Virus record (IMG/VR): IMGVR_UViG_3300023049_000005
Coordinates: 124,001 to 188,000 of that record
Direction: 5' to 3' (one strand)
Length of the DNA: 64,000 nucleotides
In this document: positions 33,959 to 52,905 of the stretch, piece by piece
Position numbering within the stretch: the first letter of the stretch is position 1
How the letters are laid out: each line of letters begins with the position of its first letter
Notes under the pieces: model-generated
The model's database searches: none
Told to the model about the DNA's origin: nothing
What the model saw: only the letters and a program-made list of their open reading frames with translations
Program-made: the position numbers and the translations under genes

Positions 33959-34043
33959 GGCTGAGTGGTGGAATTGGTAGACACGTTGGACTTAAAATCC
34001 AATGGGCATTGCGCCCGTGCGGGTTCGACTCCCGCCTCAGCTA
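33959..34043 (+). tRNA. tRNA-Leu (TAA)
   Basis: GGCTGAG/CTCAGCT acceptor, TTGGA-CT TAA AA-TCCAA, long variable arm, GGTTCGA T-loop; no encoded CCA. Confidence 0.95.
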
Positions 34044-34048
34044 CAAAT

Positions 34049-34801: not shown

Positions 34802-34990
34802 ATGAAATTTGAATTAGATAAACATCAGTTAAAAGAAATTGATCAATGGAAACAAAAGATCAAAGAGAAACACGGTAAATATGGTCATTTCGATTATATT
34901 TTTACACCCTTTGGTGCAGGAACAGGTGTTAAAATTTATAGCCACTTAGAGAAAGAATATCTAGATGTAAGTGATACACAAGATTGGTAA
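34802..34990 (+). CDS. Hypothetical small protein
   Basis: MKFELD...YIFTPFGAG...LDVSDTQDW. Confidence 0.65.
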   Translation: MKFELDKHQLKEIDQWKQKIKEKHGKYGHFDYIFTPFGAGTGVKIYSHLEKEYLDVSDTQDW

Positions 34991-34991
34991 T

Positions 34992-36275
34992 ATGTATAAA
35001 GGCGAAGATAAATATATTTTGGTAATGTTGCCCTATCCTAGTGGTAGTGGATTACATGTTGGTCATTCCTATTGTTATGCTTTAATGGATAGTTACTGCA
35101 GATGGAAAAGGTATATGGGGGAATCTGTGTTCCAACCATTTGGTTATGATAGTTTTGGGTTGCCTGCTGAATTATATGCTGACAAAGTAGGTAGAGATCC
35201 AAAAGAAGTCACACAAGAAAACATAGAGAACTTTAGGAAACAGATGGATCATATGAATACCATGTTTGAGGAAAAATTGATCACATCCGATCCTTCTTAT
35301 CAAAAATGGAGTCAGTTCATATTCGATGTCATGAAAAAAAGTGGATTGGCTTATAAAAAATTTGGGGAAACTAGTTATTGTCCAAGTTGTAAAACTACAT
35401 TGGCGAATGCTCAAATAATAGATGATTATTGTGAACGTTGTTCCTCTAAAATAGAACAGACTGAATCAGAACAATGGTACTTTAAAATCACTGATTATAT
35501 CGATAGATTGGAAAAGAACTTAGATGAAATTGATTACCCATCTAAGACCATTAAGCAACAAAGACATTGGTTGCAGAATATGAGAGAGAATAATATCGAT
35601 TGGTGTGTTTCTAGACAAAGGAAATGGGGCTGTCCTATTCCGATTGAGGGGGAAGAAGATACCTTGGATACATTTGTTGATAGTAGTTTCTACTTCATTA
35701 GATATTGTGATCCTGATAATACAGAAGAAATTTGTAGTAAAGAAAACTTTAAACAAGTTGATTTATGTATAGGTGGTAACGAACATGCTTGCGCACATTT
35801 GGTATATGCTAGATTCATGATGATGGTATTATATGATAATGGTTATGTACCTGTTGAAGAACCCTTTAAGAAAGTTGTCCATAATGGGATGATTACTAAG
35901 GATGGTTATAAGATGTCTAAATCTAAAGGTAATGTTGTTGATCCAAATGATTATGACCCAAATGAATTGAGAATGTACTTGATGTTTATCGGTCCTTACA
36001 CACAGGGTGGTGATTGGGAAGATAGCAAGATCAAAGGCATCAGAAGGTTTATTGGTAGATGGGATAGATGGATGGAAACTGCCGAAGAAAACGGAGAAGG
36101 ATTAAATGATATTAATGAATTGGAAGAAACTATTGATGATTATATGAATAGTTGGAAATTCAATAAAGTTATTTCCTCATTGATGGAATACTATAATAAG
36201 AACAAGAACAATACTATTAGTACTGATAGTAAAGAGAAGTTGAATAAGATATATAATTGTTTTAAAACAAAGTAA
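34992..36275 (+). CDS. leuS: Minimal leucyl-tRNA synthetase (no CP1 editing domain)
   Basis: MLPYPSGSGLHVGH (HIGH), GYDSFGLPAE, Zn knuckle, QWYFKITDY, DWCVSRQRKWGCPIP, DTLDTFVDSS, GGNEHA..HL.YARF, KMSKS; about 427 aa from ATG 34992. Confidence 0.9.
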   Translation: MYKGEDKYILVMLPYPSGSGLHVGHSYCYALMDSYCRWKRYMGESVFQPFGYDSFGLPAELYADKVGRDPKEVTQENIENFRKQMDHMNTMFEEKLITSDPSYQKWSQFIFDVMKKSGLAYKKFGETSYCPSCKTTLANAQIIDDYCERCSSKIEQTESEQWYFKITDYIDRLEKNLDEIDYPSKTIKQQRHWLQNMRENNIDWCVSRQRKWGCPIPIEGEEDTLDTFVDSSFYFIRYCDPDNTEEICSKENFKQVDLCIGGNEHACAHLVYARFMMMVLYDNGYVPVEEPFKKVVHNGMITKDGYKMSKSKGNVVDPNDYDPNELRMYLMFIGPYTQGGDWEDSKIKGIRRFIGRWDRWMETAEENGEGLNDINELEETIDDYMNSWKFNKVISSLMEYYNKNKNNTISTDSKEKLNKIYNCFKTK

Positions 36276-36276
36276 T

Positions 36277-37206
36277 ATGAAAGAATATATTTTCGAAAAA
36301 GGGAAAAGGGTATATAAGTTAACCGATGAGGGTATCTTATATAATAAACTTAAAGTTAATCCGATAAAGAGAATAAATCGCTTCAAGAAAGTAAAGATAC
36401 CGAAGGTGAATCCTCATCAAATTGTTATCGGTGGTGGATCTTATAACAGGAAAGTGTTTTATTATGAATTATACCACGACACCAAATTAAAAGAAGGTGA
36501 AACAGTTAGATTCAAAAACAAAATAGGAGATTACTCTAAGTCTAACCTTTTACTTAAAATGATATCAGAAAATGATCCTCCTTATTTTAGAAATATAGAT
36601 AAAAAAATATACCACTATAACTACAAGAATATTTTAATAGGAATATATGACAGTCAATATAAAGCTAGTCTTGGAACAGGTATAAACCAATCTTGTATTT
36701 CACAACGTCTACGAGGTAAAATAAATACATCTAGGTTTGTGGATTATTCATATATGGTATATGATGGCGACGAATTATTAGACAGATATAGTGATTATAA
36801 CCAATCGGGCATAAACACTGTTGTCCAAATGGACTTAGATGGTAACGTGTTGAATAAATTTGGCAATGCAAAGGATGCCGCAGACATTTTCGAGTTAGGA
36901 ACGTGTGCAGAATCACATATTGTGAAATGTTGTAGGAAAAAGAGAGAAAAGGCTTATGGGTATAGGTGGTCATATTCTTGCGATTACAGAAAGAGAATGA
37001 AGAAAATGGTAGTTAAGTATAACAAAGATGGAGATCCTATTGCTATTTATAAGAATAGACAAGATGCTGTCAAGAATATGCCTATACTCAAATCATATTT
37101 ATCTTTAGTAATAAACGGTAAAATCAACCCTAAAAAATTTAGCATCAAAGAAGTTAGTTATGATGCGGGATTAAGTATAAGAAACAAATTGGTTGAGGAA
37201 GTTTAA
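36277..37206 (+). CDS. NUMOD1/IENR1-repeat protein, degenerate HNH homing-endonuclease-like
   Basis: Three 'V.QY..DG..I..F.S..DA' type repeats; HNH-like region lacks the His/Asn residues. Confidence 0.6.
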   Translation: MKEYIFEKGKRVYKLTDEGILYNKLKVNPIKRINRFKKVKIPKVNPHQIVIGGGSYNRKVFYYELYHDTKLKEGETVRFKNKIGDYSKSNLLLKMISENDPPYFRNIDKKIYHYNYKNILIGIYDSQYKASLGTGINQSCISQRLRGKINTSRFVDYSYMVYDGDELLDRYSDYNQSGINTVVQMDLDGNVLNKFGNAKDAADIFELGTCAESHIVKCCRKKREKAYGYRWSYSCDYRKRMKKMVVKYNKDGDPIAIYKNRQDAVKNMPILKSYLSLVINGKINPKKFSIKEVSYDAGLSIRNKLVEEV

Positions 37207-37216
37207 TATATACTCT

Positions 37217-37696
37217 ATGAAGTATATTAAAGAACAGAACGAATTTGTTTTAGAAAATAAGATAACCGACTTTTTTAAGAAGTTTAATATTAGTAAGATC
37301 AAAGAAGATTTGAAAGAAAAATTAGACATAGAAGAAAGCGATTCTAAGAAAGAGATCTTCATTAAATTAACAAAGAACTTACATGATAAGTCATTTGAAT
37401 TTATAGCAAATCATCTTTCTACGATAGTTGGTGGTGCTTTGGGAGCATTGTTAGGCGATTTGATTTCTTATATCTTAACTATATTTGCAGATATAAATAC
37501 TGTTGAACAATTGTTATTAATGTTAGCAGGTATGATATTTATGTTATATCGATCTAAAACAGGTATTGATAAATATGGATTAGGTCTTAGGTCTTTTACT
37601 AAGGATGAACCAATTAAGAGTCCTGACTACGATGAACTTTCGGACAAAGATGAAATAAGCGGAGTTCATTTCATTTCTAAATTTGGGAAAGAATAA
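37217..37696 (+). CDS. Hypothetical protein with hydrophobic segments, possible internal virion protein
   Basis: Start MKYIKEQNEFVLE just after a TAATATATA late-type box. Confidence 0.65.
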   Translation: MKYIKEQNEFVLENKITDFFKKFNISKIKEDLKEKLDIEESDSKKEIFIKLTKNLHDKSFEFIANHLSTIVGGALGALLGDLISYILTIFADINTVEQLLLMLAGMIFMLYRSKTGIDKYGLGLRSFTKDEPIKSPDYDELSDKDEISGVHFISKFGKE

Positions 37697-38180: not shown

Positions 38181-38252
38181 GGACTGTTAGCTCAGAGACA
38201 GAGCAGATGGCTGTTAACCATCAGGTCGGGATCTCGGAATTCCCACAGTCCT
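38181..38252 (+). tRNA. tRNA-Asn (GTT), atypical T-arm
   Basis: GGACTGT/ACAGTCC acceptor; GATGG-CT GTT AA-CCATC; T-loop CTCGGAA; U discriminator. Confidence 0.75.
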
Positions 38253-38260
38253 CAAAATAT

Positions 38261-38334
38261 TCCTCAGTAGCTCAGTTGGTTAGAGCGTCTGACTGTTAAT
38301 CAGAATGTCGTTGGTTCGAATCCAACCTGAGGAG
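38261..38334 (+). tRNA. tRNA-Asn (GTT), canonical
   Basis: TCCTCAG/CTGAGGA, TCTGA-CT GTT AA-TCAGA, G73. Confidence 0.95.
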
Positions 38335-38344
38335 CTAGATATTT

Positions 38345-38426
38345 GCCTTCGTGGTGGAATTGATAGACACGCTAGATTTAGAATCTAGTTCCGTGAGGAG
38401 TGCAGGTTCAAGTCCTGTCGGGGGTA
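38345..38426 (+). tRNA. tRNA-Leu (TAG)
   Basis: CTAGA-TT TAG AA-TCTAG, variable arm. Confidence 0.92.
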
Positions 38427-38433
38427 CAAATAT

Positions 38434-38520
38434 TCTTGGGTTGCCGTAGTGGTCGAACGGTCCTGACTGTTAATCAGGTGAGTTAATACTCCATCGTAGG
38501 TTCAAATCCTACCCCAAGAG
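38434..38520 (+). tRNA. tRNA-Asn (GTT) with long variable arm
   Basis: TCTTGGG/CCCAAGA, CCTGA-CT GTT AA-TCAGG, 17-nt variable region. Confidence 0.85.
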
Positions 38521-38523
38521 CAT

Positions 38524-38607
38524 AGAGAAGTGGTGAAATGGGTAAACACAGGAGGATCAAAACCTCTCGCCTTTAGGGGCTTGCGAGTTCGAGTCTCGCC
38601 TTCTCTA
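38524..38607 (+). tRNA. tRNA-Leu (CAA)
   Basis: AGAGAAG/CTTCTCT, GGAGG-AT CAA AA-CCTCT. Confidence 0.88.
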
Positions 38608-38612
38608 CATAT

Positions 38613-38693
38613 TGGTAGGTACTCAGCCCATCCTGATAAGATGGAGAACTGTAATTGGTGTTGAAAATGTGGGTTCAAATCCCACTCTACCAA
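38613..38693 (+). tRNA. D-arm-less tRNA-Ile (GAT)-like RNA
   Basis: TGGTAGG/TCTACCA acceptor, 8-nt D-replacement loop, CCATC-CT GAT AA-GATGG, 24-nt variable region, GTGGG-TTCAAAT-CCCAC. Confidence 0.65.
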
Positions 38694-38698
38694 CATAT

Positions 38699-38773
38699 AG
38701 TCTAGTAGCTCAGTTGGTTTAGAGCGCAACGCTGATACCGTTGAGGTCGTAGGTTCAAGTCCTACCTAGACTA
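38699..38773 (+). tRNA. tRNA-Ile (GAT)
   Basis: AGTCTAG/CTAGACT, CAACG-CT GAT AC-CGTTG. Confidence 0.92.
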
Positions 38774-38783
38774 CAGATAAAAT

Positions 38784-38868
38784 GCTAATGTCGCATAGTT
38801 GGTCGATTGCACTCCCCTTGTAAGGGAGAACTGAAAAGACATCGGGGGTTCGAATCCCTCCATTAGCT
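38784..38868 (+). tRNA. tRNA-Thr (TGT) with extended variable region
   Basis: GCTAATG/CATTAGC, CTCCC-CT TGT AA-GGGAG. Confidence 0.85.
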
Positions 38869-38876
38869 CAAAATAT

Positions 38877-38950
38877 AGCCTATTAGCTCAGGGGTTCAGA
38901 GCGTCTGTTTTACACGCAGAAAGTCGGTGGTTCGAATCCACCATAGGCTA
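38877..38950 (+). tRNA. tRNA-Val (TAC)
   Basis: AGCCTAT/ATAGGCT, TCTGT-TT TAC AC-GCAGA. Confidence 0.92.
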
Positions 38951-39057
38951 CTAATGGGGTAGGCACTTAAACGAGTACCTAAAAATAAAGCACCTATGGT
39001 GTGTTCGTTTAAGTTTGATAGGAATGTGGTGTTTGTCGTTCCTTGATAAGAAACTAT

Positions 39058-39131
39058 GCCGATGTAGCTCAGTTGGTCAGAGCAGTTGATTTGTAATCAA
39101 CGGGTCGGGGGTTCGAATCCCTCCATCGGCT
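39058..39131 (+). tRNA. tRNA-Thr (TGT), canonical
   Basis: GCCGATG/CATCGGC, GTTGA-TT TGT AA-TCAAC. Confidence 0.95.
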
Positions 39132-39139
39132 CAAATTAT

Positions 39140-39223
39140 ATCCCTATGGTGTAATTGGTGACATCCTTGTTTTACATGCAAGAGACGTGAAGTATAATCT
39201 TGGTTCGAGTCCAAGTAGGGATA
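39140..39223 (+). tRNA. tRNA-Val (TAC) with extended variable region
   Basis: ATCCCTA/TAGGGAT, CTTGT-TT TAC AT-GCAAG, 16-nt variable region. Confidence 0.82.
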
Positions 39224-39230
39224 CAAATAA

Positions 39231-39370
39231 GTGTGTGGTCTATATACCTTAATATGATCTAGATAGTATTAAGAAGAATTGGTTAGACAAAAACTGTGAA
39301 AAGTTATGTATATAGTCTAGGATAGATATATGAATTTAACAGGGCGTGAGTTCGATTCTCACCACATGCT
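39231..39370 (+). ncRNA. tRNA-like RNA (acceptor stem + T-arm, large non-tRNA core)
   Basis: GTGTGTG/CACATGC acceptor with G3:U70, GTGAG-TTCGATT-CTCAC T-arm, internal stems ctatatac/gtatatag and cttaatat/gtattaag. Confidence 0.55.
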
Positions 39371-39377
39371 CAAATAT

Positions 39378-39451
39378 TGCGAGGTAGCTTAGTGGTCTAA
39401 AGCACTTGAGTCATAACCAAGAGATCGAGGGTTCGAATCCCTCTCTCGCAA
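39378..39451 (+). tRNA. tRNA-Met (CAT)
   Basis: TGCGAGG/TCTCGCA, CAT anticodon, A.C mismatch closing the anticodon stem. Confidence 0.82.
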
Positions 39452-39464
39452 CTATATAGTATAT

Positions 39465-39550
39465 GTCGGTGTGACCTGAGTGGCGAAGGGTGTGGACTGC
39501 AAATCCATAGAACGAAAGTTCCATCGTAGGTTCGAGTCCTACCACCGACT
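39465..39550 (+). tRNA. tRNA-Cys (GCA) with long variable arm
   Basis: GTCGGTG/CACCGAC, GTGGA-CT GCA AA-TCCAT, gaac-gaaa-gttc variable stem, U73. Confidence 0.88.
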
Positions 39551-39620
39551 CTAAGTAGTATTATAGTACATTAAGTTATTTTTACTATATTTGTAAAAAT
39601 AAACCAACAAAACTTTCATT

Positions 39621-39893
39621 ATGTTATTTAATCCAAGTCTATTATATCCAACTATATTGTTGAGCCTAGTTTTTTTATCAATAGTTAAAATATTAGATAA
39701 AAAAGCCAATAAAGAAACTTTAACGGTCATATTATCTATGGTTAGTGGTTCTGTGTTTATGATGATTCTTACTATAAGTGTAGCTAGGTTCATTTTATTA
39801 AATGATATGTGGATAGTCCTAGTATATGGTATCGGAACAGGTATCAGTAAATATTTATATATCTATTTATGTAAAAAGTATAATATTAAATAA
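39621..39893 (+). CDS. Small membrane protein
   Basis: 90 aa, three hydrophobic segments. Confidence 0.65.
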   Translation: MLFNPSLLYPTILLSLVFLSIVKILDKKANKETLTVILSMVSGSVFMMILTISVARFILLNDMWIVLVYGIGTGISKYLYIYLCKKYNIK

Positions 39894-39929
39894 GTTTTAG
39901 TATATTTGTATTGATAAACAAATTAAAAC

Positions 39930-40003
39930 GGGCCCTTAGCTCAGTTGGTTAGAGCAACTGACTCATAATCAGTAGGTCGATGGTTCGAGTCCATCAGGGC
40001 CCA
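39930..40003 (+). tRNA. tRNA (CAT), likely Ile2 (lysidine) type
   Basis: GGGCCCT/AGGGCCC, ACTGA-CT CAT AA-TCAGT; own TATATTTG box at 39901. Confidence 0.9.
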
Positions 40004-40024
40004 CTTAACTAAAAACAAACAACT

Positions 40025-40459: not shown

Positions 40460-40726
40460 TTGAAAACATTTGTAGAAAAATTTATTACAGAAGAAAGTAG
40501 AACTGAACTTGATTTGGATTATCCAAATTATGAAGGTGATGTTCACAATGAGGTAATGATACCTCACAGCAAATTGGATTGGGCAGAAGCACCATCGATG
40601 GATATTGATGAAGCAATAAAAATTATTTCTAATATGAAAGAGAAAGGTGCTAACCGAGTTTATTTTTCTGCACATAGTGACCATCATGGATATTATTTCT
40701 ATGGTACACAATTAAAAGAGATTTAA
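40460..40726 (+). CDS. Hypothetical protein
   Basis: 88-aa ORF, TTG start. Confidence 0.6.
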   Translation: MKTFVEKFITEESRTELDLDYPNYEGDVHNEVMIPHSKLDWAEAPSMDIDEAIKIISNMKEKGANRVYFSAHSDHHGYYFYGTQLKEI

Positions 40727-41004
40727 GATATTCAACAAGATGATCTATCGCAAATATTTATATATTTGAGGAAGCTCAAGACATCATTGCTTAAGGTAGG
40801 AGAGAGTTTAATAATAAAGGAGAAGTCATAAAATAGGAAAGATACCAAAGACTTCGTTGGTAGATGCCTTTATCTCTCGTTTGTACTACCGAGGATGCAA
40901 CTCAAACAGATCTAGTGGGTGAGCAACACTAAAATGATCGGGTATGAGGCTTAGATAAATGATAGAATAGAACAGAATCTTGGCTACAATCAGTTGAATT
41001 TATC
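40727..41004 (+). ncRNA. rnpB: Compact RNase P RNA (bacterial A-type catalytic core, no P18/P19)
   Basis: P1 attcaac/gttgaat; P2 tctatcg/tgataga; P3; GAGGAAG; P4 agc(t)caaga 40773-81 / tcttggct 40978-85 with bulged U; P5 catc/gatg(caa); P6 pseudoknot ttgctta/tgagcaa; P7; P15-17 with GGU; tagataaatg and acagaa conserved regions. Confidence 0.85.
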
Positions 41005-41058
41005 ACTTAGATTAGCAATATTTTTATATATACAATATAAAAATATTGTGATATCTAA

Positions 41059-44000
41059 ATGACTCAAAGTGGGATGATAAAGGGGAAACAGATTAATATT
41101 GAAAGTATTAATTTAATACCAAACGAAAGCCCTTTAGCTTTAACTTCTTTTACCGTATCTACGGCATCTACGACATTTAGTGGAAAACAGATTATCAATT
41201 TAGAGTATTTAAACGATCAATTAGATTTAAAGATTGATATTACTCAAATAAACGATAATGCTACTTCTTCTACTTCTTCGTTATGGAGTGCTGATAAGAT
41301 ATATACTGAGATAACAGGATTAAGTCAATCAATCGATTCTGTTAGTATAAGTATATCAAATATACTGAATGATTTTATCACGGGATCTACTACAGGGTGG
41401 AGTTCTGAGAAAATTGATGAAGAATTAATTACATTAGAGAATAGTGTTAATATTAAAATTGATTCAGTAAGCATAAGTGTTGCTAATTTACTAAATGATT
41501 CAATCACAGGATCAACAACGGGTTGGTCTTCTGAGAAGATTAATAATGAGCTTGATTTAAAACTCGATGACAGCCAATTAAATGATGCAGCAGCCACGTC
41601 ATCTACTACATCATTGTGGAGTGTGAATAAGATATATACTGAATTACAAGCCATCGAAGCTAATGATTTACAAATAAATGACAATGCTACAAGTTCTACA
41701 ACTTCATTATGGAGTGCTAATAAGATATACACAGAGATACAAGGACTAAGTTCATCTGTTGATGCTAGAATTGATATAATAAATATCAGTGTATCTAATA
41801 TTGAAGGTGATATCATAGGTCTAAGTAATTCAATTGATAGTTTAAGTGTAAGTGTAGCCGATAACACAGCTAACATCGATTCTGTTAGTATAAGTGTTGC
41901 TAATATCTTAAACGATGGTATCACAGGATCTACAACAGGGTGGAGTTCTGAGAAAATAAACAACGAGTTAGATCTTAAATTAGATGATAGTCAGCTAAAT
42001 GATAGTATAATAGGTACTCTTTCTTTATGGAGTAGTGATAAGATAAGCAGTGAAATACAAGGGTTAAGTTCTTCTGTAAATACTAGAATAGACACCGTAA
42101 GCGCAAGTGTGATCGGTTTAAGTCAATCGGTTGATTCTCTAAGTCAAAGTGTAGCTACTAATACTACAAACATCGATTCAGTTAGTATCAGTGTAGCCAA
42201 CCTACTTAATGATAGTATCACAGGTTCAATAACAGGATGGAGTTCTGAGAAAATTGATGAAGAATTAATTACATTAGAGAATAATATTAATAGTCAATTA
42301 GATCTTAAATTAGATGACAGTCAGTTAAATGATACTATAGTGGGTACTGATTCTTTATGGAGTAGTGATAAGATAGATAGTGAGATACAAGGATTAAGTT
42401 CCTCTGTTAACACTAGAATAGATACCGTAAGTGCTAGTGTCATTGGATTAAGTCAATCAGTTGATTCGATAAGTATCAGTGTTACTAACAATACTAGTAC
42501 TATTACGGGATTAAGTCAATCTATTGATGTGATAAATGTTACTATTTCTAATATAGAAGGTGATATTACAGGATTAAGTCAGTCAATTGACTCAGTAAGT
42601 ATTAGTGTAGCTAACCTTCTTAATGACTCAATAACAGGTTCTACAACAGGTTGGAGTTCTGAGAAAATTGATGAAGAATTAATTACATTAGAGAATAATA
42701 TCAATAGTCAATTAGATCTTAAATTAGATGTTAGTCAATTAAATGATGCGGCTGCAACAAGCTCAACTACTTCATTGTGGAGTGTGAATAAGATTTATAC
42801 TGAATTACAAGCTATTGAAGCTAATGATCTACAAATAAATGATGCTGTTACTGCAACAGATAGTGTTTGGAGTTCTAATAAGATAGACAACGAACTAGAT
42901 CTTAAAGTAGACAAAACACAAATAGACGATGGTGGTACAGGTACTACATCGTTGTGGAGTGTGGATAGACTGTTGACTGAATTCGAATTAAAACTAGATG
43001 TTAGTCAATTAAATGATAGTATTATATCAGCAACGGGTCTATGGAGTAGTGATAAGATAAGCAGTGAAATACAAGGATTAAGTTCTTCTGTAAATACTAG
43101 AATAGACACCGTAAGTGCAAGTGTGATCGGTTTAAGTCAATCAGTAGATTCATTAAGTCAAAGTGTTGCTACTAATACTACAAACATCGATTCAGTTAGT
43201 ATCAGTGTAGCTAATATACTTAATGATAGTGTTACAGGTTCAACAACAGGATGGTCATCAAATAAGATAGATAGTGAGTTAGATTTTAAATTAGACGACA
43301 CACAATTAAACGATGTTGTTATAGGAACAAACTCATTATGGAGTTCTGATAAAATTAACAGTGAGGTACAAGGTTTGAGTTCTTCTGTGTATGCTGAAAT
43401 AGATTCTGTAAGTATAAGTGTCGCCAATCTATTAAACGATAGTATCACAGGATCAACAACAGGTTGGACATCACAAAAAATTGATAGCGAATTAGATCTT
43501 AAGCTAGATGTTAGTCAATTAAATGATGCGGCTGCAACAAGTTCTACTACCTCTCTTTGGAGTGTGAATAAAATTTACAACGAATTACAAGCTATTGATG
43601 CAGACCATCTACAAATAAATGACAATGCTACAAGCTCTACAACTTCTGTTTGGAGTGGTAATAAAGTTTATACTGAAATACAAGGATTAAGTTCTTCTGT
43701 ATATGCCGAAATAGATTCTGTTAGTATTAGTGTGTCTAATCTTCTTAATGATAACATTACGGGATCAACAACGGGTTGGTCTTCTGAGAAAATTGATGAA
43801 GAATTAATTACATTAGAGAATAATATTAATATTAAAATTGATTCAGTAAGCATAAGTGTTGCTAATTTACTAAATGACAGTATTACGGGATCAACAACAG
43901 GTTGGTCTTCTGAGAAGATTAATAGTGAACTTGATTTAAAACTAGATGATAGTCAATTAAATGATGTTGCTGCAACAAGCTCTACTACATCACTATGGAG

Positions 44001-47000
44001 CGTTAATAAAATTTATACTGAATTACAAGCTATTGATGCTGATCATCTACAAATAAACGATAATGTAACAAGCTCTACTACATCAGTATGGAGTGGTAAT
44101 AAAGTTTACACAGAGATACAAGGATTAAGTTCTTCTGTTAACACTAGAATTGATACAGTGAGCGCAAGTGTTATAGGATTAAGCCAATCAGTAGATTCAT
44201 TAAGTGTGAGTGTTTTTAATAACACCACTACTATAACAGGATTAAGTCAGTCAATTGATTCAGTAAGTATTAGTGTAGCTAATTTATTGAACGATTCAAT
44301 TACAGGATCTACTACAGGATGGTCTTCACAAAAGATAAACGATGAACTTGATCTTAAACTAGATGATAGTCAGTTAAATGATAGTGCTGCTACTAGTTCT
44401 ACTACTTCTTTGTGGAGCGTGAACAAGATCTATAATGAATTAGAATTAAAGCTTGATGATAGCCAAATCAATGACGCTGCTACTAGTTCTACTACCTCAT
44501 TATGGAGTAGTGATAAACTATATACTGAATTCGAAAACAAACTTGATACAAGTTTAACTAATAGTTACATTTTCTTAGGGTCACCACAAAATGTAGCAAC
44601 TCCTACCGAAACTGAAAAAATTTATATAAGCAGTGTTAGTGATGTACCATTAACAGAAGAATACTTATTCTTAAATGGGAACACAGTTACATTAGCTCAG
44701 AAAATAGAAAGTAATTTCCAAATTGCCGAAAGAACACAACAAGGTTGGATGGTTAGTAAAAGAAATGTCAATGAAGAAGTTATATTTGATATAGACGTAT
44801 CTTCTGCTTCTCTATTTAATACTGCATCAAACGAACTAGATATAAGTAATTACACAGGGGTTGATTCCTTAAATATCATAGATAGTACAACATCATCTCC
44901 TATATCAATAACTATATCTTCAATATCAGGTCTAGAAAGTGGTTATAATATAAACTTACGTTTAGAAGGACAGGGATCTATAACATTTGAAAACACATCT
45001 GCAACAGCAGCTAGTGTGGGGGATTTAATTTTATTTAATGATGAGAATAGAACGATAGTGGGTGGAACATATTCACAGGGTATAAATATTAAGAATAAAA
45101 ATGGTGTCAATTTAGAAATAGACCCACAATTTGATATTATAATAGACCAAGTAAATAGTAATATCAACGATAGTACAACATCGTCTACTACATCAGTATG
45201 GAGTGCTAACAAGATTTACACAGAATTACGAGCTATTGATGCTGATCATCTACAAATAAACGATAATGCAACAAGCTCTACTACATCAGTATGGAGTGGT
45301 AATAAAGTTTACACAGAGATACAAGGATTAAGTCAATCGATAGACAGTGTGAGTATTAGTGTAGCTAATATCTTAAATGATAGCATTACAGGATCTACTA
45401 CGGGATGGAGTTCACAAAAGATAAATAATGAACTCGACCTAAAACTAGACGACACTCAGTTAAATGATAGTATAATAGGTACTGATTCTTTATGGAGCAG
45501 TGATAAAATAAATAGTGAAGTGCAAGGTTTGAGTTCTTCTGTGAATTCTAGAATAGATACTGTAAGTGCTAGTGTAATAGATAACACAAACACTATAATA
45601 GGTCTAAGTAGCTCTGTTGATTCTTTAAGCCTGAGTGTATTTAATAACACAACCGATATTACAGGATTAAGCAATTCAATAGACATTATTAATGTTACTA
45701 TCTCAAATATAGAAGGTGATATTATAGGACTGAGCAATTCTATCGATAGTGTTAGTATTAGTGTGTCTAACTTATTAAATGATAGTATAACTGGTTCAAC
45801 AACAGGTTGGACTTCACAAAAGATTAACAATGAGTTAGATCTTAAATTGGATGATAGTCAATTAAACGATGCTGCTGCTACAAGTAGTACTACATCATTA
45901 TGGAGTGTGAATAAGATATATACTGAATTACAAGCCATTGATGCTAACGATCTTCAAATAAATGATAATATAACAGCTACGGATAGTGTTTGGAGTTCTA
46001 ATAAGATAGATAGCGAAATACAAGGATTAAGCTCATCTGTAAATACTAGAATAGACACAGTGAGCGCAAGTGTGATTGGTTTATCCCAATCAGTAGATTC
46101 ATTAAGTGTGAGTGTATTTAATAACACTACTGATATTACAGGATTAAGTCAATCTATTGATTCTGTTAGTATAAGTGTTGCTAATATCTTAAACGATGGT
46201 ATCACAGGATCTACAACAGGGTGGAGTTCTAATAAGATAGACAGTGAACTTGATCTTAAACTAGATGTTAGTCAATTAAATGATAGTATAATAGGTACTC
46301 TTTCTTTATGGAGTTCAGATAAGACTAACACAGAGATACAGGGGTTAAGTTCTTCTGTAAATACTAGAATAGACACCGTAAGCGCAAGTGTGATCGGTTT
46401 AAGCCAATCAGTAGATTCATTAAGTCAAAGTGTTGCTACTAATACTACAAACATCGATTCAGTAAGCATAAGTGTAGCTAATATCTTAAATGATAGCATC
46501 ACAGGTTCTACTACGGGATGGAGTTCTGAAAAGATAGATAACGAACTTGATCTTAAACTTGATGATAGTCAATTAAATGATGCTGCTGCGACGAGCAGTA
46601 CAACTTCGCTATGGAGTGTGAATAAGATTTATACCGAGCTACAAACTATTGATGCTGATCATTTACAAATAAATGATAACGCAACAAGCTCTACTACATC
46701 AGTATGGAGTGGCAACAAAGTTTATACAGAGATACAGGGATTAAGCTCATCGGTATACGCTGAGATTGATTCAGTAAGCATAAGTGTATCTAATCTTCTT
46801 AATGATAGTATTATAGGTTCAACAACAGGATGGACTTCACAGAAGATAAGTGATGAACTTGATCTTAAACTAGACGACACTCAAATCAATGACACGGCTA
46901 CTAGTTCAACTACTTCTTTATGGAGTAGTGATAAATTATATACAGAATTCCAAGGTAAATTGGGTACAGGATTAACCGAGAGTTATATATTCTTAGGTTC

Positions 47001-50000
47001 TGTGGGAAATATAGCTACTGAAACACCAACTGAAAAAATATATCCGATAAACGACAACGATGTTCTATTGACCGAAAGCTATTTGGCTCAATTTAGAAGT
47101 GATTTAAGTATCGGTCAAAAAGTAGAAACGGTTAATCAAATAGCCGAGAAGACTCCAAATGGTTGGTCAATTATAAAGAAAAACATTAACGAAGACTTAA
47201 TATATGATATTGATATATCTAATTCTAGTAATTATACTATTTCTTCAAATGAATTAAATATAAGTGATTACTTAGGTGTAGACACTTTAAATATTATAGA
47301 TGGTTCAACATCATCACCATTTTCTATAACAGTATCAACTATTGCAGGACTTTATGCTGATTTCAAAATTAGGTTTACTGTGGACACGGGTGGGGAAGTT
47401 ACTTTTGAACACACTGACTTGGCTACTGCGTCTTTTGATGATATAGTATTATCAAGTGGGGTAAATAAAACTATCACAGGAAGTACTTATAGTGATTATT
47501 TATCTATACAAAAAATAGATATAATAAATAAAGAAACGGATTTATCTTCTGATAGTATAACAAGTAATATAACAAATAATATTAGTAATAGTATCAATGA
47601 TGGTACTACTAGTTCTACTACATCACTTTGGAGTGCTAATAAGATATATACTGAATTACAAGCTATTGATGCTGATCATTTACAAATAATCGACAGTGTT
47701 ACTAGCTCTACTACTTCTGTTTGGAGTGGTAACAAAGTCTACACAGAGATACAAGGATTGAGTTCATCTATATTTGCTGAAATAGATTCAGTAAGTATTA
47801 GTGTGTCTAATCTTCTTAACGATAGTATTACGGGTTCTACAACAGGGTGGACATCACAAAAGATAAGCAATGAACTTGACCTTAAACTAGATGATACTCA
47901 AATCAATGACACAGCTACTAGTTCTACTACATCATTATGGAGTAGTAATAAATTATATACAGAATTTGAAAATAAATTAGATACAGGATTAACAGAAAGT
48001 TATATTTTCCTTGGTAATACAGCCAATGAATCAAGCAGAGTTCCAACATCTAAATTATACATAGATAACGTTAGTACAGATATACTAACAGAGACTTATG
48101 TGTCCAATAATTATTCCACTGCTTCAATAGGACAAAAGGTTGAGGCTAGTGACCAAATAGCAGAAAAGACACAAACCGATTGGATGATATCTAAGAAGAA
48201 TCACAACCAAGACATAGTTAAAGATCTAGATATATCTTCTGCTTCTTTATTTGCTACTTCTTCTAATCAAATGAACATTACACAATTCATTGGTGTGGAC
48301 ACTATAAACATAATTGATAGTAGCACTTCTTCTTTTTCTGCTACAATATCTACTATATTTGGATTGTTTGATAGATCTAGTGTTAAATTTAAAGTCACAA
48401 CAGGCGGTAGCGTAACATTTGAACATACAGACATAGCCTCTGCTTCTTTTTATGATATTAGCTTACTTAGTGGAGGAAATGTTACAATAATTGGAAGCAC
48501 ATATAGTGAGTTTTTAAGGTTACAAAAAATTAATAATATTAACATCGAAGAAGATAATGTGTCTTTAGGTGTCGGATCAGTAACTATAAATGATAGTTCT
48601 ACTAGTTCTACAACAGAAACATGGAGTGCCGATAAGATATACACAGAGATAACAGGTATATCTGCCTCTTTAAGCTCGGAGATAAACGATTCGATAACAG
48701 CAACAGATAGTACGTGGAGTAGTGATAAGATACAGACAGAAATAGATGATTCTAGTTTATATACATCAAACGGTACAATATCTTCTCCTAGGACAATATA
48801 TGGTAACGAAACACAATTAATATTAGATGGTGGTCAATTTGAGATTTGGGAAGGAATCGATACAACCGAGTATGGTGTTATTTTAAGAGAAAGTGGTGGT
48901 GGTATTAGAGGACAATTTGTATATGATGCGCTATCTAATACAACTAAACTCGAATTATTAAACGGAACAAGTAGTTTCTTCTTAGCTAATGGTGGAACTG
49001 TTAGTGTTAAAGGTGCATTCACTATTGATGATGACGATAATTCACATTATTTACAATTCTCAGCAGGATCGTTAACACAAAGTTTAACTTATGTTTTCCC
49101 TTCAGATTATGGAACGGATGGTCAAGCACTTATAACAGATGGTTCGGGAACATTAGATTGGATTACGGTTGCTACTAATTCACTTAGTATAAATGATAGT
49201 TCTACTAACTCTACTACTGAGGTATGGAGCGCAGATAAGACATATACAGAGATACAAGGTTTGAGTTCTTCTGTGTTTGGTGAAATTGATTCTGTTAGTA
49301 TTAGTGTATCTAATCTCCTTAATGATAGTATTACAGGTTCAACAACAGGTTGGACATCTCAAAAAATTAATAACGAACTAGATCTTAAACTAGATGATAC
49401 TCAGTTAAATGATGCGGCTGCTACTAGTTCTACTACATCTTTATGGAGTGTGAATAAGATTTATACAGAATTAGAATTAAAACTTGATGATAGTCAATTA
49501 AATGATGCTGTTACTGCAACAGATAGTGTTTGGAGTTCTAATAAGATAGACAACGAACTAGATCTTAAAGTAGACAAAACACAAATAGACGATGGTGGTA
49601 CAGGTACTACATCGTTGTGGAGTGTGGATAGACTGTTGACTGAATTCGAATTAAAACTAGATGTTAGTCAATTAAATGATAGTATTATATCAGCAACGGG
49701 TCTATGGAGTAGTGATAAGATAGATAACGAACTAGATCTTAAACTAGATGATACTCAGTTAAATGATGCGGCTGCTACTAGTTCTACTACTTCATTGTGG
49801 AGTGTGAATAAGATTTATACAGAACTAGATTTAAAACTAGACGATAGTCAGTTAAATGATACAATAACAACGACTAATTCATTATGGTCTTCAGACAAAA
49901 TAGATACCGAGTTAGACCTTAAGTTAGACGATACTCAGATTAATGATTCTGCTACAAATGTAAATATTTTATGGTCTTCTGATAAAATAGATACCGAGTT

Positions 50001-52905
50001 AGATTTAAAACTTGACGACACACAATTAGATGATGGAGTTACTGGTACAGATTCTTTCTGGTCATCAGTTAAGATTACTACTGAGTTAGATACTAAACTT
50101 GATGATAATCAGTTAAATGATAGTGCTACAAATTCAACAACTTCATTATGGAGTGCTGATAAAATTTATACAGAACTAGATTTAAAACTTGATGATAGTC
50201 AGTTAAATGATGGTGCAACCAGTTCTACAACATCAATGTGGAGTGCTAATAAGATACAGTTTGAACTAGACAGTTTGAGTTTTAGTAGTGTAGTTATAAA
50301 TGATTCAGTTACAGCAACAGATTCTGTATGGTCTTCTGATAAAATAGATACAGAACTAGATACTAAACTTGATGATACTCAGATTAATGATTCTGCTACA
50401 AATGTAAATATTTTATGGTCTTCTGATAAAATAGATACCGAGTTAGACCTTAAACTTGATGATACTCAATTAAATGACGGTGTTACAGGGACAGACTCTT
50501 TCTGGTCTTCTGTTAAGATTACTTCTGAATTAGACTCTAAACTAGATGATAGTCAATTAAATGATAGTGCTACAAATTCTTTAACATCAATGTGGAGTGC
50601 TGATAAAATTTATACTGAATTACAAGCTATTGAAGCTAATGATCTACAAATAATCGACAGTGTTACTAGCTCTACTACATCAGTATGGAGTGGTAATAAA
50701 GTTTATACAGAATTAGAATTAAAACTAGATGATAGTCAACTAAATGATAGTATAACTACATCTACTAACTTATGGAGTGCAGATAAAATACAAACAGAGA
50801 TAAACGATTCTAGTTTTTATTTAAATAATGGTACATTATCTACTAATAGAACAATTGATGCTAATGAATCGACATTAACATTGGAGAGAGGTCAATTTGA
50901 AATAACATCAGGAGCTGATACTGTAGATTATGGTTTAATAGTTAGACGAGATGTAGGATTGACAGCGTATGCTAAATTAGTCTTTGATGAGTTAAATGAC
51001 ACTGCTATATTAGATGTAGCAAGTCCAACTGGTAGTTTTTTCTCAGCGAGTAATGGTATAGTAAGCGTAAATGGAGAGTTTAGGATTTTAGACGATGATC
51101 AATCTAATTATTTAAGGTTCTCAGCAGGATCACTAACACAGAGTTTAATATATGCTTTCCCACCTAATTATGGTACAAATGGAGAAGTATTAATAACAAA
51201 TGGTTTAGGTGATCTATCATGGACTGCTTCTAGTGGGGGTGGTATATCATCATTAACTGAAAATACTATATTAATAGGTAATACTGTTAATGAACCACAA
51301 GAAAGAGTTGTAGAAAAAATTTATGTCGATAACTTATCTACTGAATTCTTATCTACCGAATACTTATATACGAATCACTATACTACTTCTATTTCACAAA
51401 AAATAGAATCTAAATATCAGGTTGCAGAAAGAACACAACAAGATTGGATGATTTCTAAAAAGAACCATAATCAAGATATAATATTTGATATAGATATATC
51501 CAATACTAATATTTACTCAACTAGTAGCCAAGCATTAGATATAGAAAATTATTTGGGTGCTGACGTATTAAATATAATTGATAGTTCTACGACTTCTTCT
51601 ATCGGTGTTACAATATCATCTATTATAGGTGTGTTAAATGATTATAGATTTGCTTTAAGATTAGACGGAGAAGGCACAATAAACTTTGATGATGTAGCAG
51701 CAGCGTCTGCTTCGGTTAACAGTATAGTACTAATAGGAACACAGAGCCAAATATTGACAGGTGGAACATACTCAGCAGATATAAAATTCAGAAGAGTTAA
51801 TGGAGTTAACGTACAAATTGATCCACAAGTGAGTGTTGTATCAGTAGGTACTAGTGGTGGTGGAGGTTCTAATATTAATGATGCTGTTACTGCAACAGAA
51901 TCTACATGGTCTTCTACTAAAATATCCTCTGAGATTACTAGTGGTAATACAAATATATACACTGCTGACGGGACATTAACATCAGATAGAACGATATCAG
52001 GGGGAGCTAATGCTATAATTTTAGCTAATGGTGATTTTAATATACAACCATCGGGTGTAACTAATATTGGGTTTGGAATAAAAAACGTATCTGCTAATAC
52101 TTTAGCTGAGTTCATATTTGATTCGTCAAATGGTGGAGCAAAATTAGATTTGAAAAATTCATCACTAGATAGTTACTTCTCAGCAGATAATGGTGTAGTT
52201 AGTGTTGCGGCAGCAGCAGAATTTAGAATATTTGATGATAATAATTCACATTATTTAAGACTATCGGCAGGATCATTAACAGCAAATAGAACTTACGTTT
52301 TTCCATCAGATTATGGGACAGCAGGGGGAATAATGACATCAGATGGTGCAGGTAATTTATCTTGGTCAGTTGTTGGTGCAGGAATCGATTCATCAGGAGG
52401 TACTGTGTCACTTGAATCAGATCAAAGAGGAAACATATTCCAAATAGGAAGGGATACTAATGACTATATCTTGGTTAATACCACTGTTATCGATTTCAGA
52501 TTAGATGGTAACTTAGATATGAGGTTAGAAAATGATGGTGATCTTCATGTTGATGGTGATGTATTTGCTTTCTCTACTACAACATCTGATGAAAGCCTTA
52601 AAGATAATATCGAAACAATCGAAAGTGCATCAGAAAAAATATCAAAACTTCGTGGTGTAGAATTTATTTGGAATGGTACATCAAGAAAAGGACAGAAGGA
52701 TATTGGTCTTATAGCACAGGAAGTTGAAAAAGTTATACCTGAAGTAGTTTATGATAAAACTTTAACTACAGGAGAATACGCAGATAATCCTAAAGATGTT
52801 AAGACAGTAGATTATGCAAAACTTGTTGCTCTGCTTATTGAATCTAATAAAGAACTACAAAACAGAGTTTCTGATTTAGAAGAAGAAATAAAAAAGAAAA
52901 AATAA
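41059..52905 (+). CDS. Giant repeat-rich tail fibre with C-terminal peptidase S74 (intramolecular chaperone) domain
   Basis: 3948 aa; dozens of (I/L)ND....T..(L/G)WS..KI..E repeats; C-term SDESLKDNI...KLRGVEF.W...GLIAQEVEKVIPEVV...VDYAKLVALLIE. Confidence 0.8.
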   Translation: MTQSGMIKGKQINIESINLIPNESPLALTSFTVSTASTTFSGKQIINLEYLNDQLDLKIDITQINDNATSSTSSLWSADKIYTEITGLSQSIDSVSISISNILNDFITGSTTGWSSEKIDEELITLENSVNIKIDSVSISVANLLNDSITGSTTGWSSEKINNELDLKLDDSQLNDAAATSSTTSLWSVNKIYTELQAIEANDLQINDNATSSTTSLWSANKIYTEIQGLSSSVDARIDIINISVSNIEGDIIGLSNSIDSLSVSVADNTANIDSVSISVANILNDGITGSTTGWSSEKINNELDLKLDDSQLNDSIIGTLSLWSSDKISSEIQGLSSSVNTRIDTVSASVIGLSQSVDSLSQSVATNTTNIDSVSISVANLLNDSITGSITGWSSEKIDEELITLENNINSQLDLKLDDSQLNDTIVGTDSLWSSDKIDSEIQGLSSSVNTRIDTVSASVIGLSQSVDSISISVTNNTSTITGLSQSIDVINVTISNIEGDITGLSQSIDSVSISVANLLNDSITGSTTGWSSEKIDEELITLENNINSQLDLKLDVSQLNDAAATSSTTSLWSVNKIYTELQAIEANDLQINDAVTATDSVWSSNKIDNELDLKVDKTQIDDGGTGTTSLWSVDRLLTEFELKLDVSQLNDSIISATGLWSSDKISSEIQGLSSSVNTRIDTVSASVIGLSQSVDSLSQSVATNTTNIDSVSISVANILNDSVTGSTTGWSSNKIDSELDFKLDDTQLNDVVIGTNSLWSSDKINSEVQGLSSSVYAEIDSVSISVANLLNDSITGSTTGWTSQKIDSELDLKLDVSQLNDAAATSSTTSLWSVNKIYNELQAIDADHLQINDNATSSTTSVWSGNKVYTEIQGLSSSVYAEIDSVSISVSNLLNDNITGSTTGWSSEKIDEELITLENNINIKIDSVSISVANLLNDSITGSTTGWSSEKINSELDLKLDDSQLNDVAATSSTTSLWSVNKIYTELQAIDADHLQINDNVTSSTTSVWSGNKVYTEIQGLSSSVNTRIDTVSASVIGLSQSVDSLSVSVFNNTTTITGLSQSIDSVSISVANLLNDSITGSTTGWSSQKINDELDLKLDDSQLNDSAATSSTTSLWSVNKIYNELELKLDDSQINDAATSSTTSLWSSDKLYTEFENKLDTSLTNSYIFLGSPQNVATPTETEKIYISSVSDVPLTEEYLFLNGNTVTLAQKIESNFQIAERTQQGWMVSKRNVNEEVIFDIDVSSASLFNTASNELDISNYTGVDSLNIIDSTTSSPISITISSISGLESGYNINLRLEGQGSITFENTSATAASVGDLILFNDENRTIVGGTYSQGINIKNKNGVNLEIDPQFDIIIDQVNSNINDSTTSSTTSVWSANKIYTELRAIDADHLQINDNATSSTTSVWSGNKVYTEIQGLSQSIDSVSISVANILNDSITGSTTGWSSQKINNELDLKLDDTQLNDSIIGTDSLWSSDKINSEVQGLSSSVNSRIDTVSASVIDNTNTIIGLSSSVDSLSLSVFNNTTDITGLSNSIDIINVTISNIEGDIIGLSNSIDSVSISVSNLLNDSITGSTTGWTSQKINNELDLKLDDSQLNDAAATSSTTSLWSVNKIYTELQAIDANDLQINDNITATDSVWSSNKIDSEIQGLSSSVNTRIDTVSASVIGLSQSVDSLSVSVFNNTTDITGLSQSIDSVSISVANILNDGITGSTTGWSSNKIDSELDLKLDVSQLNDSIIGTLSLWSSDKTNTEIQGLSSSVNTRIDTVSASVIGLSQSVDSLSQSVATNTTNIDSVSISVANILNDSITGSTTGWSSEKIDNELDLKLDDSQLNDAAATSSTTSLWSVNKIYTELQTIDADHLQINDNATSSTTSVWSGNKVYTEIQGLSSSVYAEIDSVSISVSNLLNDSIIGSTTGWTSQKISDELDLKLDDTQINDTATSSTTSLWSSDKLYTEFQGKLGTGLTESYIFLGSVGNIATETPTEKIYPINDNDVLLTESYLAQFRSDLSIGQKVETVNQIAEKTPNGWSIIKKNINEDLIYDIDISNSSNYTISSNELNISDYLGVDTLNIIDGSTSSPFSITVSTIAGLYADFKIRFTVDTGGEVTFEHTDLATASFDDIVLSSGVNKTITGSTYSDYLSIQKIDIINKETDLSSDSITSNITNNISNSINDGTTSSTTSLWSANKIYTELQAIDADHLQIIDSVTSSTTSVWSGNKVYTEIQGLSSSIFAEIDSVSISVSNLLNDSITGSTTGWTSQKISNELDLKLDDTQINDTATSSTTSLWSSNKLYTEFENKLDTGLTESYIFLGNTANESSRVPTSKLYIDNVSTDILTETYVSNNYSTASIGQKVEASDQIAEKTQTDWMISKKNHNQDIVKDLDISSASLFATSSNQMNITQFIGVDTINIIDSSTSSFSATISTIFGLFDRSSVKFKVTTGGSVTFEHTDIASASFYDISLLSGGNVTIIGSTYSEFLRLQKINNINIEEDNVSLGVGSVTINDSSTSSTTETWSADKIYTEITGISASLSSEINDSITATDSTWSSDKIQTEIDDSSLYTSNGTISSPRTIYGNETQLILDGGQFEIWEGIDTTEYGVILRESGGGIRGQFVYDALSNTTKLELLNGTSSFFLANGGTVSVKGAFTIDDDDNSHYLQFSAGSLTQSLTYVFPSDYGTDGQALITDGSGTLDWITVATNSLSINDSSTNSTTEVWSADKTYTEIQGLSSSVFGEIDSVSISVSNLLNDSITGSTTGWTSQKINNELDLKLDDTQLNDAAATSSTTSLWSVNKIYTELELKLDDSQLNDAVTATDSVWSSNKIDNELDLKVDKTQIDDGGTGTTSLWSVDRLLTEFELKLDVSQLNDSIISATGLWSSDKIDNELDLKLDDTQLNDAAATSSTTSLWSVNKIYTELDLKLDDSQLNDTITTTNSLWSSDKIDTELDLKLDDTQINDSATNVNILWSSDKIDTELDLKLDDTQLDDGVTGTDSFWSSVKITTELDTKLDDNQLNDSATNSTTSLWSADKIYTELDLKLDDSQLNDGATSSTTSMWSANKIQFELDSLSFSSVVINDSVTATDSVWSSDKIDTELDTKLDDTQINDSATNVNILWSSDKIDTELDLKLDDTQLNDGVTGTDSFWSSVKITSELDSKLDDSQLNDSATNSLTSMWSADKIYTELQAIEANDLQIIDSVTSSTTSVWSGNKVYTELELKLDDSQLNDSITTSTNLWSADKIQTEINDSSFYLNNGTLSTNRTIDANESTLTLERGQFEITSGADTVDYGLIVRRDVGLTAYAKLVFDELNDTAILDVASPTGSFFSASNGIVSVNGEFRILDDDQSNYLRFSAGSLTQSLIYAFPPNYGTNGEVLITNGLGDLSWTASSGGGISSLTENTILIGNTVNEPQERVVEKIYVDNLSTEFLSTEYLYTNHYTTSISQKIESKYQVAERTQQDWMISKKNHNQDIIFDIDISNTNIYSTSSQALDIENYLGADVLNIIDSSTTSSIGVTISSIIGVLNDYRFALRLDGEGTINFDDVAAASASVNSIVLIGTQSQILTGGTYSADIKFRRVNGVNVQIDPQVSVVSVGTSGGGGSNINDAVTATESTWSSTKISSEITSGNTNIYTADGTLTSDRTISGGANAIILANGDFNIQPSGVTNIGFGIKNVSANTLAEFIFDSSNGGAKLDLKNSSLDSYFSADNGVVSVAAAAEFRIFDDNNSHYLRLSAGSLTANRTYVFPSDYGTAGGIMTSDGAGNLSWSVVGAGIDSSGGTVSLESDQRGNIFQIGRDTNDYILVNTTVIDFRLDGNLDMRLENDGDLHVDGDVFAFSTTTSDESLKDNIETIESASEKISKLRGVEFIWNGTSRKGQKDIGLIAQEVEKVIPEVVYDKTLTTGEYADNPKDVKTVDYAKLVALLIESNKELQNRVSDLEEEIKKKK

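Follow-up and report, generated by a model that had tools for sequence, protein, structure and literature searches.

RNase P RNA is regarded as a universal cellular ribozyme. Bacterial type-A RNase P RNA (Rfam RF00010), exemplified by E. coli M1 RNA and by a P18-less form common in Bacteroidota, is about 320–400 nt long and combines a catalytic domain with a full specificity domain (P8–P14) in which CR-II and CR-III form the docking site for the tRNA elbow. Type T RNase P RNA of Thermoproteaceae (Pyrobaculum) is about 200 nt, keeps an archaeal-type catalytic domain, has lost most or all of the specificity domain and works with archaeal protein subunits, showing that such RNAs can be functional enzymes. 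Engineered mini and micro RNase P RNAs, laboratory constructs consisting of a bacterial catalytic domain alone, cleave pre-tRNA in vitro at high ionic strength and are helped by the protein subunit. Among viruses, camelpox virus, a eukaryotic virus, encodes a single RNA resembling bacterial and archaeal RNase P RNA, which was reported inactive in pre-tRNA processing in vitro, had little effect on host RNase P, and has no tRNA-array context (PMC3001073). Theta (minimal HDV-like) ribozymes are encoded next to phage tRNA genes and are proposed to free phage tRNA maturation from host nucleases, but they are cis-acting self-cleavers proposed for 3′-trailer removal, and 5′ maturation was assigned to cellular RNase P (bioRxiv 10.1101/2023.06.13.544163).

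A compact homologue of bacterial type-A RNase P RNA was identified at 40729–41003 (+) of a 64,000-nt stretch (the window) of the 270,756-bp IMG/VR viral contig IMGVR_UViG_3300023049_000005. The window has a GC content of about 0.30, and the RNA has a GC content of 0.36. The sequence is present in lake-water DNA metagenomes; no RNA run was listed for it, and the DNA runs gave sequence variants only. The RNA lies in a 332-nt gap between an 88-aa ORF (40460–40726) and a 3948-aa ORF (41059–52905), all on the + strand. A same-strand array of 13 tRNA genes (38181–40004), detected with Rfam and ARAGORN, ends 724 nt upstream and is separated from the RNA by two small ORFs; a further tRNA-Leu lies at 33959–34044. 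No promoter or terminator was predicted nearby above background.

An earlier note, made from the sequence alone, had described a phage-encoded compact RNase P RNA at 40727–41004, and that observation is confirmed, with every catalytic-domain helix it listed present at the stated coordinates. P1 pairs 40730–36 (AUUCAAC) with 40993–99, plus an inner GAU/AUC at 40739–41 with 40988–90. P2 pairs 40744–49 with 40961–66, and P3 is a hairpin at 40751–68. CR-I (40768–81) comprises GAGGAA followed by the P4 5′ strand (40773–81), which pairs with 40978–85 and has a bulged U at 40776. P4 pairs 2 and 3 are changed relative to the usual bacterial sequence (GC with GC instead of AG with CU). P5 pairs 40782–85 with 40894–97. 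The P6 pseudoknot pairs 40787–91 with 40922–26 in the P17 loop; the 7-bp version proposed in the note, 40787–93 with 40920–26, also pairs. P7 (40795–99 with 40886–90) encloses the reduced specificity domain of 86 nt (40800–40885). J5/15 is GCAA (40897–40900), the counterpart of E. coli A248/A249 next to the cleavage site, as assigned by comparison with an E. coli-like RNase P RNA in L041, one of the IMG/VR loci retrieved below. The P15–P16–P17 arm (40901–40948) consists of P15 (40901–04 with 40945–48), P16 (40909–12 with 40936–39), and P17 (40913–17 with 40927–31), with the L15 GGU at 40941–43. CR-IV is AGAUAAAUGA (40953–62), overlapping the P2 3′ strand, and CR-V is ACAGAA (40972–77), followed by the P4 3′ strand; the spacing between these blocks equals that of the L041 RNA. 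The conserved GNAA...UC and ACAGAA context of P4 expected of RNase P RNAs from all domains (Rfam clan CL00002) is present. Only four nucleotides (GCUU, 40949–52) separate P15 from CR-IV, and P18 is absent. P18 is also absent in many accepted type-A RNAs, mostly from Bacteroidota, so its absence alone does not exclude type-A membership.

At the curated Rfam gathering thresholds, only tRNAs were reported in the window. A permissive scan of 551 nt gave a full-length match to RNaseP_arch (RF00373, model positions 1–288 of 288, 40734–40995) at 38.6 bits and E 1.4e-9, against a gathering score of 84. The archaeal model probably wins the clan competition because it, like this RNA, lacks P18 and the distal specificity-domain helices. 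Folding energy was uninformative: the minimum-free-energy z-score of the whole region is not significant (−0.36), as expected for a pseudoknotted, AU-rich RNA.

Relatives were sought by several routes. The window RNA had no blastn match among GenBank phages, nor did loci L004 and the full-size L015; only some family members matched phages DLP_6 and the huge phages described below. The giant downstream ORF matched only the window's own contig. One divergent relative of the upstream ORF (L002) lacks the RNA at the syntenic site, so the gene is dispensable in some related phages. IMG/VR was then scanned for the fixed-spacing CR-IV/CR-V motif, which returned 76 loci. In about 60 of these, a GGAA-NN-U-N5 motif 79–277 nt upstream is perfectly (8 of 8) complementary to the P4 3′ strand, with many different base-pair combinations. 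Extraction gave 53 distinct RNAs, of which eight are full-size bacterial-type RNAs and the rest, about 45, are compact (159–297 nt) and share the skeleton of the window RNA; a member of roughly 160 nt lies at L075:1544–1705. A covariance model (R1) built from 24 viral sequences, excluding the window, matched 40731–40997 at 169.9 bits (E 3.4e-46), full-length with one 67-nt insertion in the specificity-domain hairpin, and this was the only hit in the 64 kb. Across all viral loci, the compact class defined here (type-A catalytic domain, no canonical P18, CR-I to CR-IV distance under about 210 nt) scores 87–192 bits against R1, with the window RNA in the middle of this range, and full-size bacterial-type RNAs score 26–61 bits. 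The CR-I to CR-IV distance is 183 nt in the window RNA and 79–206 nt in the viral class.

Covariation was measured in a MAFFT alignment of 32 sequences and a model-based alignment of 46 sequences, and every helix is supported. Respective pairing is 99% and 98% for P2, 100% and 100% for P4, 99% and 99% for P5, 98% and 86% for P6, 99% and 99% for P7, 96% and 96% for P15, 89% and 92% for P16, and 84% and 80% for P17. The basal 4 bp of P3, which aligned poorly with MAFFT, are 94% paired in the 46 sequences. The inner P1 helix is 97% paired once a 1-nt register difference is allowed, and the outer helix is variable (68%). Compensatory double changes occur at most variable pairs, including 4 of 6 pairs in P2, 3 of 4 in P3, 6 of 8 in P4, 4 of 4 in P5, and 5 of 5 in P6; P2 and P6 are not part of the model's structure. 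Slid-partner controls mostly give 10–60% paired, and none of 500 column shuffles reached the observed values. GGAA, the bulged U, the J5/15 A at 40900, and the L15 GGU are invariant in 46 of 46 sequences, and A at 40899 in 43 of 46. None of these invariant nucleotides was imposed by the search pattern, but the invariance of CR-IV and CR-V was, and it carries no weight.

The closest relative, a 95%-identical soil-metagenome contig, matches 40729–41003 with 14 substitutions and has unrelated flanks, which delimits the gene. Two substitution pairs are perfect compensatory changes in P16 (40911 with 40937 and 40912 with 40936), and changes at 40779, 40803, and 40867 convert pairs to G-U. Other contigs match both ends of the RNA but replace the interior of the specificity domain with 18–88 unrelated nucleotides, and further relatives have about 30 nt or none, identifying this region as the hypervariable module. 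Rfam aligns 40824–40846 to CR-II and 40878–40885 to CR-III with moderate posterior probability, and these stretches are only weakly CR-II-like and CR-III-like; the full type-A specificity domain is not present. Of three specificity-domain stems proposed in the note, gagag/ctctc and ataaagg/cctttat are compatible with natural variants (changes to G-U pairs). The third, gaagtc/gacttc, is contradicted by substitutions in the closest relative (40825 G>T and 40853 T>C), whereas an alternative stem, UACCAA 40843–48 with UUGGUA 40857–62, is unchanged and preferred by the energy model. A non-functional relic, either a decaying host rnpB fragment captured by the phage or contaminating host sequence, would fit the sub-threshold Rfam score, the degenerate look of the AU-rich specificity domain, and the absence of the RNA from L002. 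This reading is strongly disfavoured and very unlikely, because structure-preserving evolution is seen at every helix across about 45 viral contigs and in the nearest relative, the compact form was absent from 103 sampled cellular RNase P RNAs, and the RNA, with GC content fitting the phage, lies on a 271-kb viral contig between phage genes. The relatives do not show random, non-compensatory decay.

In 45 compact-class loci, 335 of 340 tRNA genes lie on the strand of the RNA. In 16 loci a tRNA lies within 30 nt, in 8 loci tRNAs flank the RNA on both sides within 300 nt, and 17 loci show no tRNA in the flanks retrieved. Spacers in the window's tRNA array are 2–12 nt, short, AU-rich, and conserved. 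The tRNA genes have U at −1 in 12 of 13, encode C74 in 12 of 13, and encode no CCA. Other family loci encode full CCA, including 12 of 12 tRNA genes in DLP_6. U(−1) and a 3′ C74/C75 that pairs with the L15 GGU are preferred substrate features of bacterial RNase P. The window array also holds unusual tRNAs with long variable arms and Asn, Thr, Val, or Cys anticodons, and one with an atypical T-arm. The note's suggestion that the remodelled specificity domain might accept the odd neighbouring tRNAs is not supported, because reduction or loss of this domain is general in the family, including phages whose arrays ARAGORN calls as ordinary tRNAs. An active ribozyme acting mainly on other substrates, such as the class-II-like odd tRNAs, tRNA-like structures in phage mRNAs or polycistronic transcripts, or host RNAs, would fit a specificity broadened or shifted by domain loss and the position of the window RNA between ORFs and not between tRNAs. 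This is unlikely given the family-wide reduction, the fit of the invariant GGU to the encoded C74 or CCA ends, and the lack of any identified alternative substrate.

The UvsX-like recombinase and T4-type RNA ligase 1 (Rnl1) of the window are closest to those of the 634–735 kb uncultured huge phages LR745206 and LR756501-4 (49–58% and 41–52% amino-acid identity) and more distantly related to those of T4-like phages. These huge phages belong to the “Mahaphage” clade and were predicted to infect Bacteroidetes (PMC7162821). LR756502, LR756501/3, and LR745206 carry unannotated copies of the compact RNA. The cultured Stenotrophomonas phage DLP_6 (KU682439.2) also carries an unannotated copy at about 105,774–106,022, 3 nt upstream of a tRNA-Arg gene, scoring 54.7 bits against RF00010 (E 8.5e-15). 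Family members match RF00010 full-length (positions 1–367 of 367) with E values of 1e-12 to 1e-25, but all compact members tested fall below gathering (32–87 bits against 84 or 100), reflecting the missing specificity domain and P18 and explaining why they are not annotated. Best clan hits are RNaseP_arch or RNaseP_bact_a and not the type-T model. With its P15–P17 arm, P6, and GGU, the architecture is bacterial type A; there is no sign of common descent with type T RNAs, and the resemblance is functional only. The stable RNAs rnaC and rnaD of the T4 tRNA cluster were considered as degenerate relatives and rejected (best 4.1 bits, E 0.69).

For comparison with cells, 185,579 species-representative genomes were scanned for the P18-less CR-IV/CR-V arrangement, yielding at least 120 loci, mostly from Bacteroidota. 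All 103 with a matching P4 have a CR-I to CR-IV distance of 222–359 nt, meaning a full specificity domain, and the compact form was therefore not seen in this partial sample of cellular RNAs. Similarity to cellular RNAs is confined to the CR-IV/CR-V stretch used as the search pattern, so no cellular donor can be named.

A tblastn search with E. coli RnpA, the only RnpA query used, found evident host DNA in some “phage” records but nothing in DLP_6, the huge phages, the retrieved loci, or the window, which covers 64 kb, about a quarter, of this phage genome. No RnpA, PRORP, or HARP-type Pfam domain was detected in the 30 window ORFs scanned, and PHROGs and Pfam searches of the neighbours returned mostly orphans and no RNase P protein. 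A protein subunit encoded with the RNA was thus not detected, and any protein partner would come from the host. The RNA could instead be a decoy or competitor that binds host RnpA to sequester or retarget it, shutting down host tRNA maturation or another RnpA-dependent process, and does not catalyse cleavage itself. This would fit the retained protein-contacting CR-IV and CR-V regions and the reduced specificity domain, which is needed for efficient tRNA recognition in cells, and a decoy role has been discussed for the camelpox RNA (PMC3001073). It is unlikely, because elements needed for catalysis and substrate binding but not for protein binding are invariant or covary (the bulged U, the J5/15 A, the L15 GGU, and the whole P15–P17/P6 module), and embedding in tRNA arrays fits a processing role better.

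The analysis establishes that the window encodes a miniaturised, P18-less type-A RNase P RNA belonging to the phage, with the complete catalytic-domain fold and the nucleotides that in bacterial RNase P form the active site and hold the substrate, and that it is one member of a large phage RNA family under strong selection for this fold and usually embedded in tRNA arrays. Its transcription, catalytic activity, and protein partner are inferred. The RNA is likely transcribed rightward with the tRNA array and the upstream small ORFs, folds into an active ribozyme, and pairs its GGU with C74 (or CCA) of phage pre-tRNAs. It would cleave their short AU-rich leaders after U(−1), releasing tRNAs from the polycistronic transcript, and where the RNA sits between tRNAs, the same cleavages would release the RNA itself. 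It most likely borrows host RnpA, as no phage rnpA was detected in the sequences searched and CR-IV and CR-V are kept. Recognition probably rests on the acceptor stem, leader, and 3′ end, as in domain-less natural and engineered RNase P RNAs. The benefit would be tRNA 5′-processing capacity that does not depend on continued host rnpB expression during infection, which fits the phage's other translation and RNA-repair genes (tRNAs, an aaRS, and T4-type RNA ligase). Overall, this explanation is given a probability of about 0.75. The note's interpretation, a compact phage-encoded RNase P RNA that matures the phage's own polycistronic tRNAs, is supported, although tRNA maturation remains an inference. 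It fits the embedding of the family in same-strand tRNA arrays and the U(−1) and C74 features of the window's tRNA genes, and conservation of the nucleotides that build the active site and bind the substrate's 3′ end, together with the tRNA-array context, argues for an active 5′-leader endonuclease for phage pre-tRNAs.

Literature searches, limited to open-access papers and bioRxiv so that a report in a subscription journal cannot be excluded, found no description of a phage-encoded RNase P RNA. None is mentioned in a 2024 RNase P review, a 2026 evolution paper, the DLP6 genome paper, a survey of viral tRNA clusters, or the huge-phage paper, and the only viral example found was the inactive-looking camelpox RNA. 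More likely than not, tailed phages, from T4-like 170-kb genomes to the largest known 735-kb genomes, carry a large and previously unrecognised family of miniaturised RNase P ribozymes, overlooked because they fall below Rfam's thresholds. In this view they are co-transcribed within tRNA arrays and would give the phage its own tRNA 5′-maturation activity, alone or by taking over host RnpA. Members of about 160 nt with no specificity domain would be the smallest natural RNase P RNAs, and catalytic-domain-only constructs provide their mechanistic precedent. The family exposes an annotation blind spot and is directly testable because cultured DLP_6 carries a copy. It forms a natural series of shrinking RNase P RNAs, from full size down to about 160 nt, with rich covariation, useful for working out the minimal requirements for catalysis and substrate recognition without a specificity domain and for compact ribozyme engineering. 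A widespread phage family would add the 5′-processing ribozyme to the translation-related genes that large phages carry (tRNAs, tmRNA, aaRS, and ribosomal proteins) and would suggest that phages secure tRNA maturation during host shut-off.

Four tRNA genes of 85–88 nt in the window (38434-38521, 38784-38869, 39140-39224, and 39465-39551) have long (class-II-like) variable arms but carry Asn (GUU), Thr (UGU), Val (UAC), and Cys (GCA) anticodons. The Asn, Thr, and Val genes each have an ordinary 75-nt counterpart with the same anticodon elsewhere in the array (38261, 39058, and 38877). In bacteria, long variable arms are normally limited to Leu, Ser, and Tyr tRNAs, so the charging identity of these four genes is uncertain. 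A tRNA-like gene with a GUU anticodon (38181-38252) was detected by Rfam (46.8 bits) but not by ARAGORN, and has an atypical T-arm and T-loop. Nearly all spacers of the tRNA array (38253-39464) follow one template, with C74, then an A/U-rich run, ending in AU immediately before the next tRNA (U at −1 in 12 of 13). None of the genes encodes CCA.

A 434-aa fragment of a class-I aminoacyl-tRNA synthetase (Met/Ile/Leu/Val type) is followed directly by a 309-aa ORF with a weak, sub-threshold match to NUMOD1 (homing-endonuclease-like) and by an overlapping 167-aa ORF (34971-37696, all three). This arrangement looks like a synthetase gene interrupted by a mobile endonuclease. A perfect 14-bp A/T-only inverted repeat (41016-41048; 41016-29 with 41035-48, 5-nt loop) lies between the compact RNase P RNA and the start of a 3948-aa ORF. 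The repeat is unique in the window and is not a canonical terminator. It could mark the 3′ end of the RNA or a processing or regulatory site. Two giant ORFs, of 3948 aa (41059-52905) and 2199 aa (9127-15726, reverse strand), have no significant Pfam or PHROG match in the parts tested. The first is followed by a ConA-like/Laminin_G_3 protein (52905-53831), which suggests a fiber or adhesin module.

Among the viral loci retrieved for comparison (designated by L numbers), those that carry the compact RNA also carry tmRNA genes (L035:1261-1644 and L067:5069-5412) and suppressor-type tRNAs (anticodon UUA in L008:1065-1139 and CUA in L067:9933-10005). The suppressor-type tRNAs hint at stop-codon recoding in those phages. 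In locus L028 (1299-1413), a sub-threshold Rfam match to the Y RNA-like YrlA (37.7 bits against 69, E 9e-5) lies directly beside a tRNA gene on a viral contig. Two family members, L032:200-396 and L045:11290-11476, score 105–110 bits with R1, the covariance model built from viral members, but failed the simple P4 test that assumes a bulged U (5 of 8 pairs). Their P4 may have a different register or bulge. The cultured Stenotrophomonas phage DLP_6 (L080:2302-2550; KU682439.2, about 105,774-106,022) has an unannotated compact RNase P RNA in its 30-tRNA region, with two extra hairpins where P18 would be.

The smallest family members (L037:7653-7811, L070:9783-9944, and L075:1544-1705) are 159–162 nt in length and have lost the specificity domain entirely. 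P5 is closed by a loop whose six nucleotides (GUUGAG) form P6 with CUCAAC in the P17 loop. These RNAs sit directly upstream of tRNA-Gln, and L075 still matches RF00010 full-length (67 bits, E 3e-18). They would be smaller than any natural RNase P RNA known to us. At the other extreme, some viral contigs carry full-size bacterial-type RNase P RNAs (L020:4461-4781, L005:3891-4253, L015:7344-7704, L054, L057, L072, and L025). Some of these may be host DNA on prophage contigs (the RNA of a further locus, L041, is E. coli-like). Several of the full-size RNAs are embedded in tRNA arrays, and L020 lies between tRNA-Cys and tRNA-Gly. Phages therefore show a range of RNase P RNAs from full-size to minimal forms.
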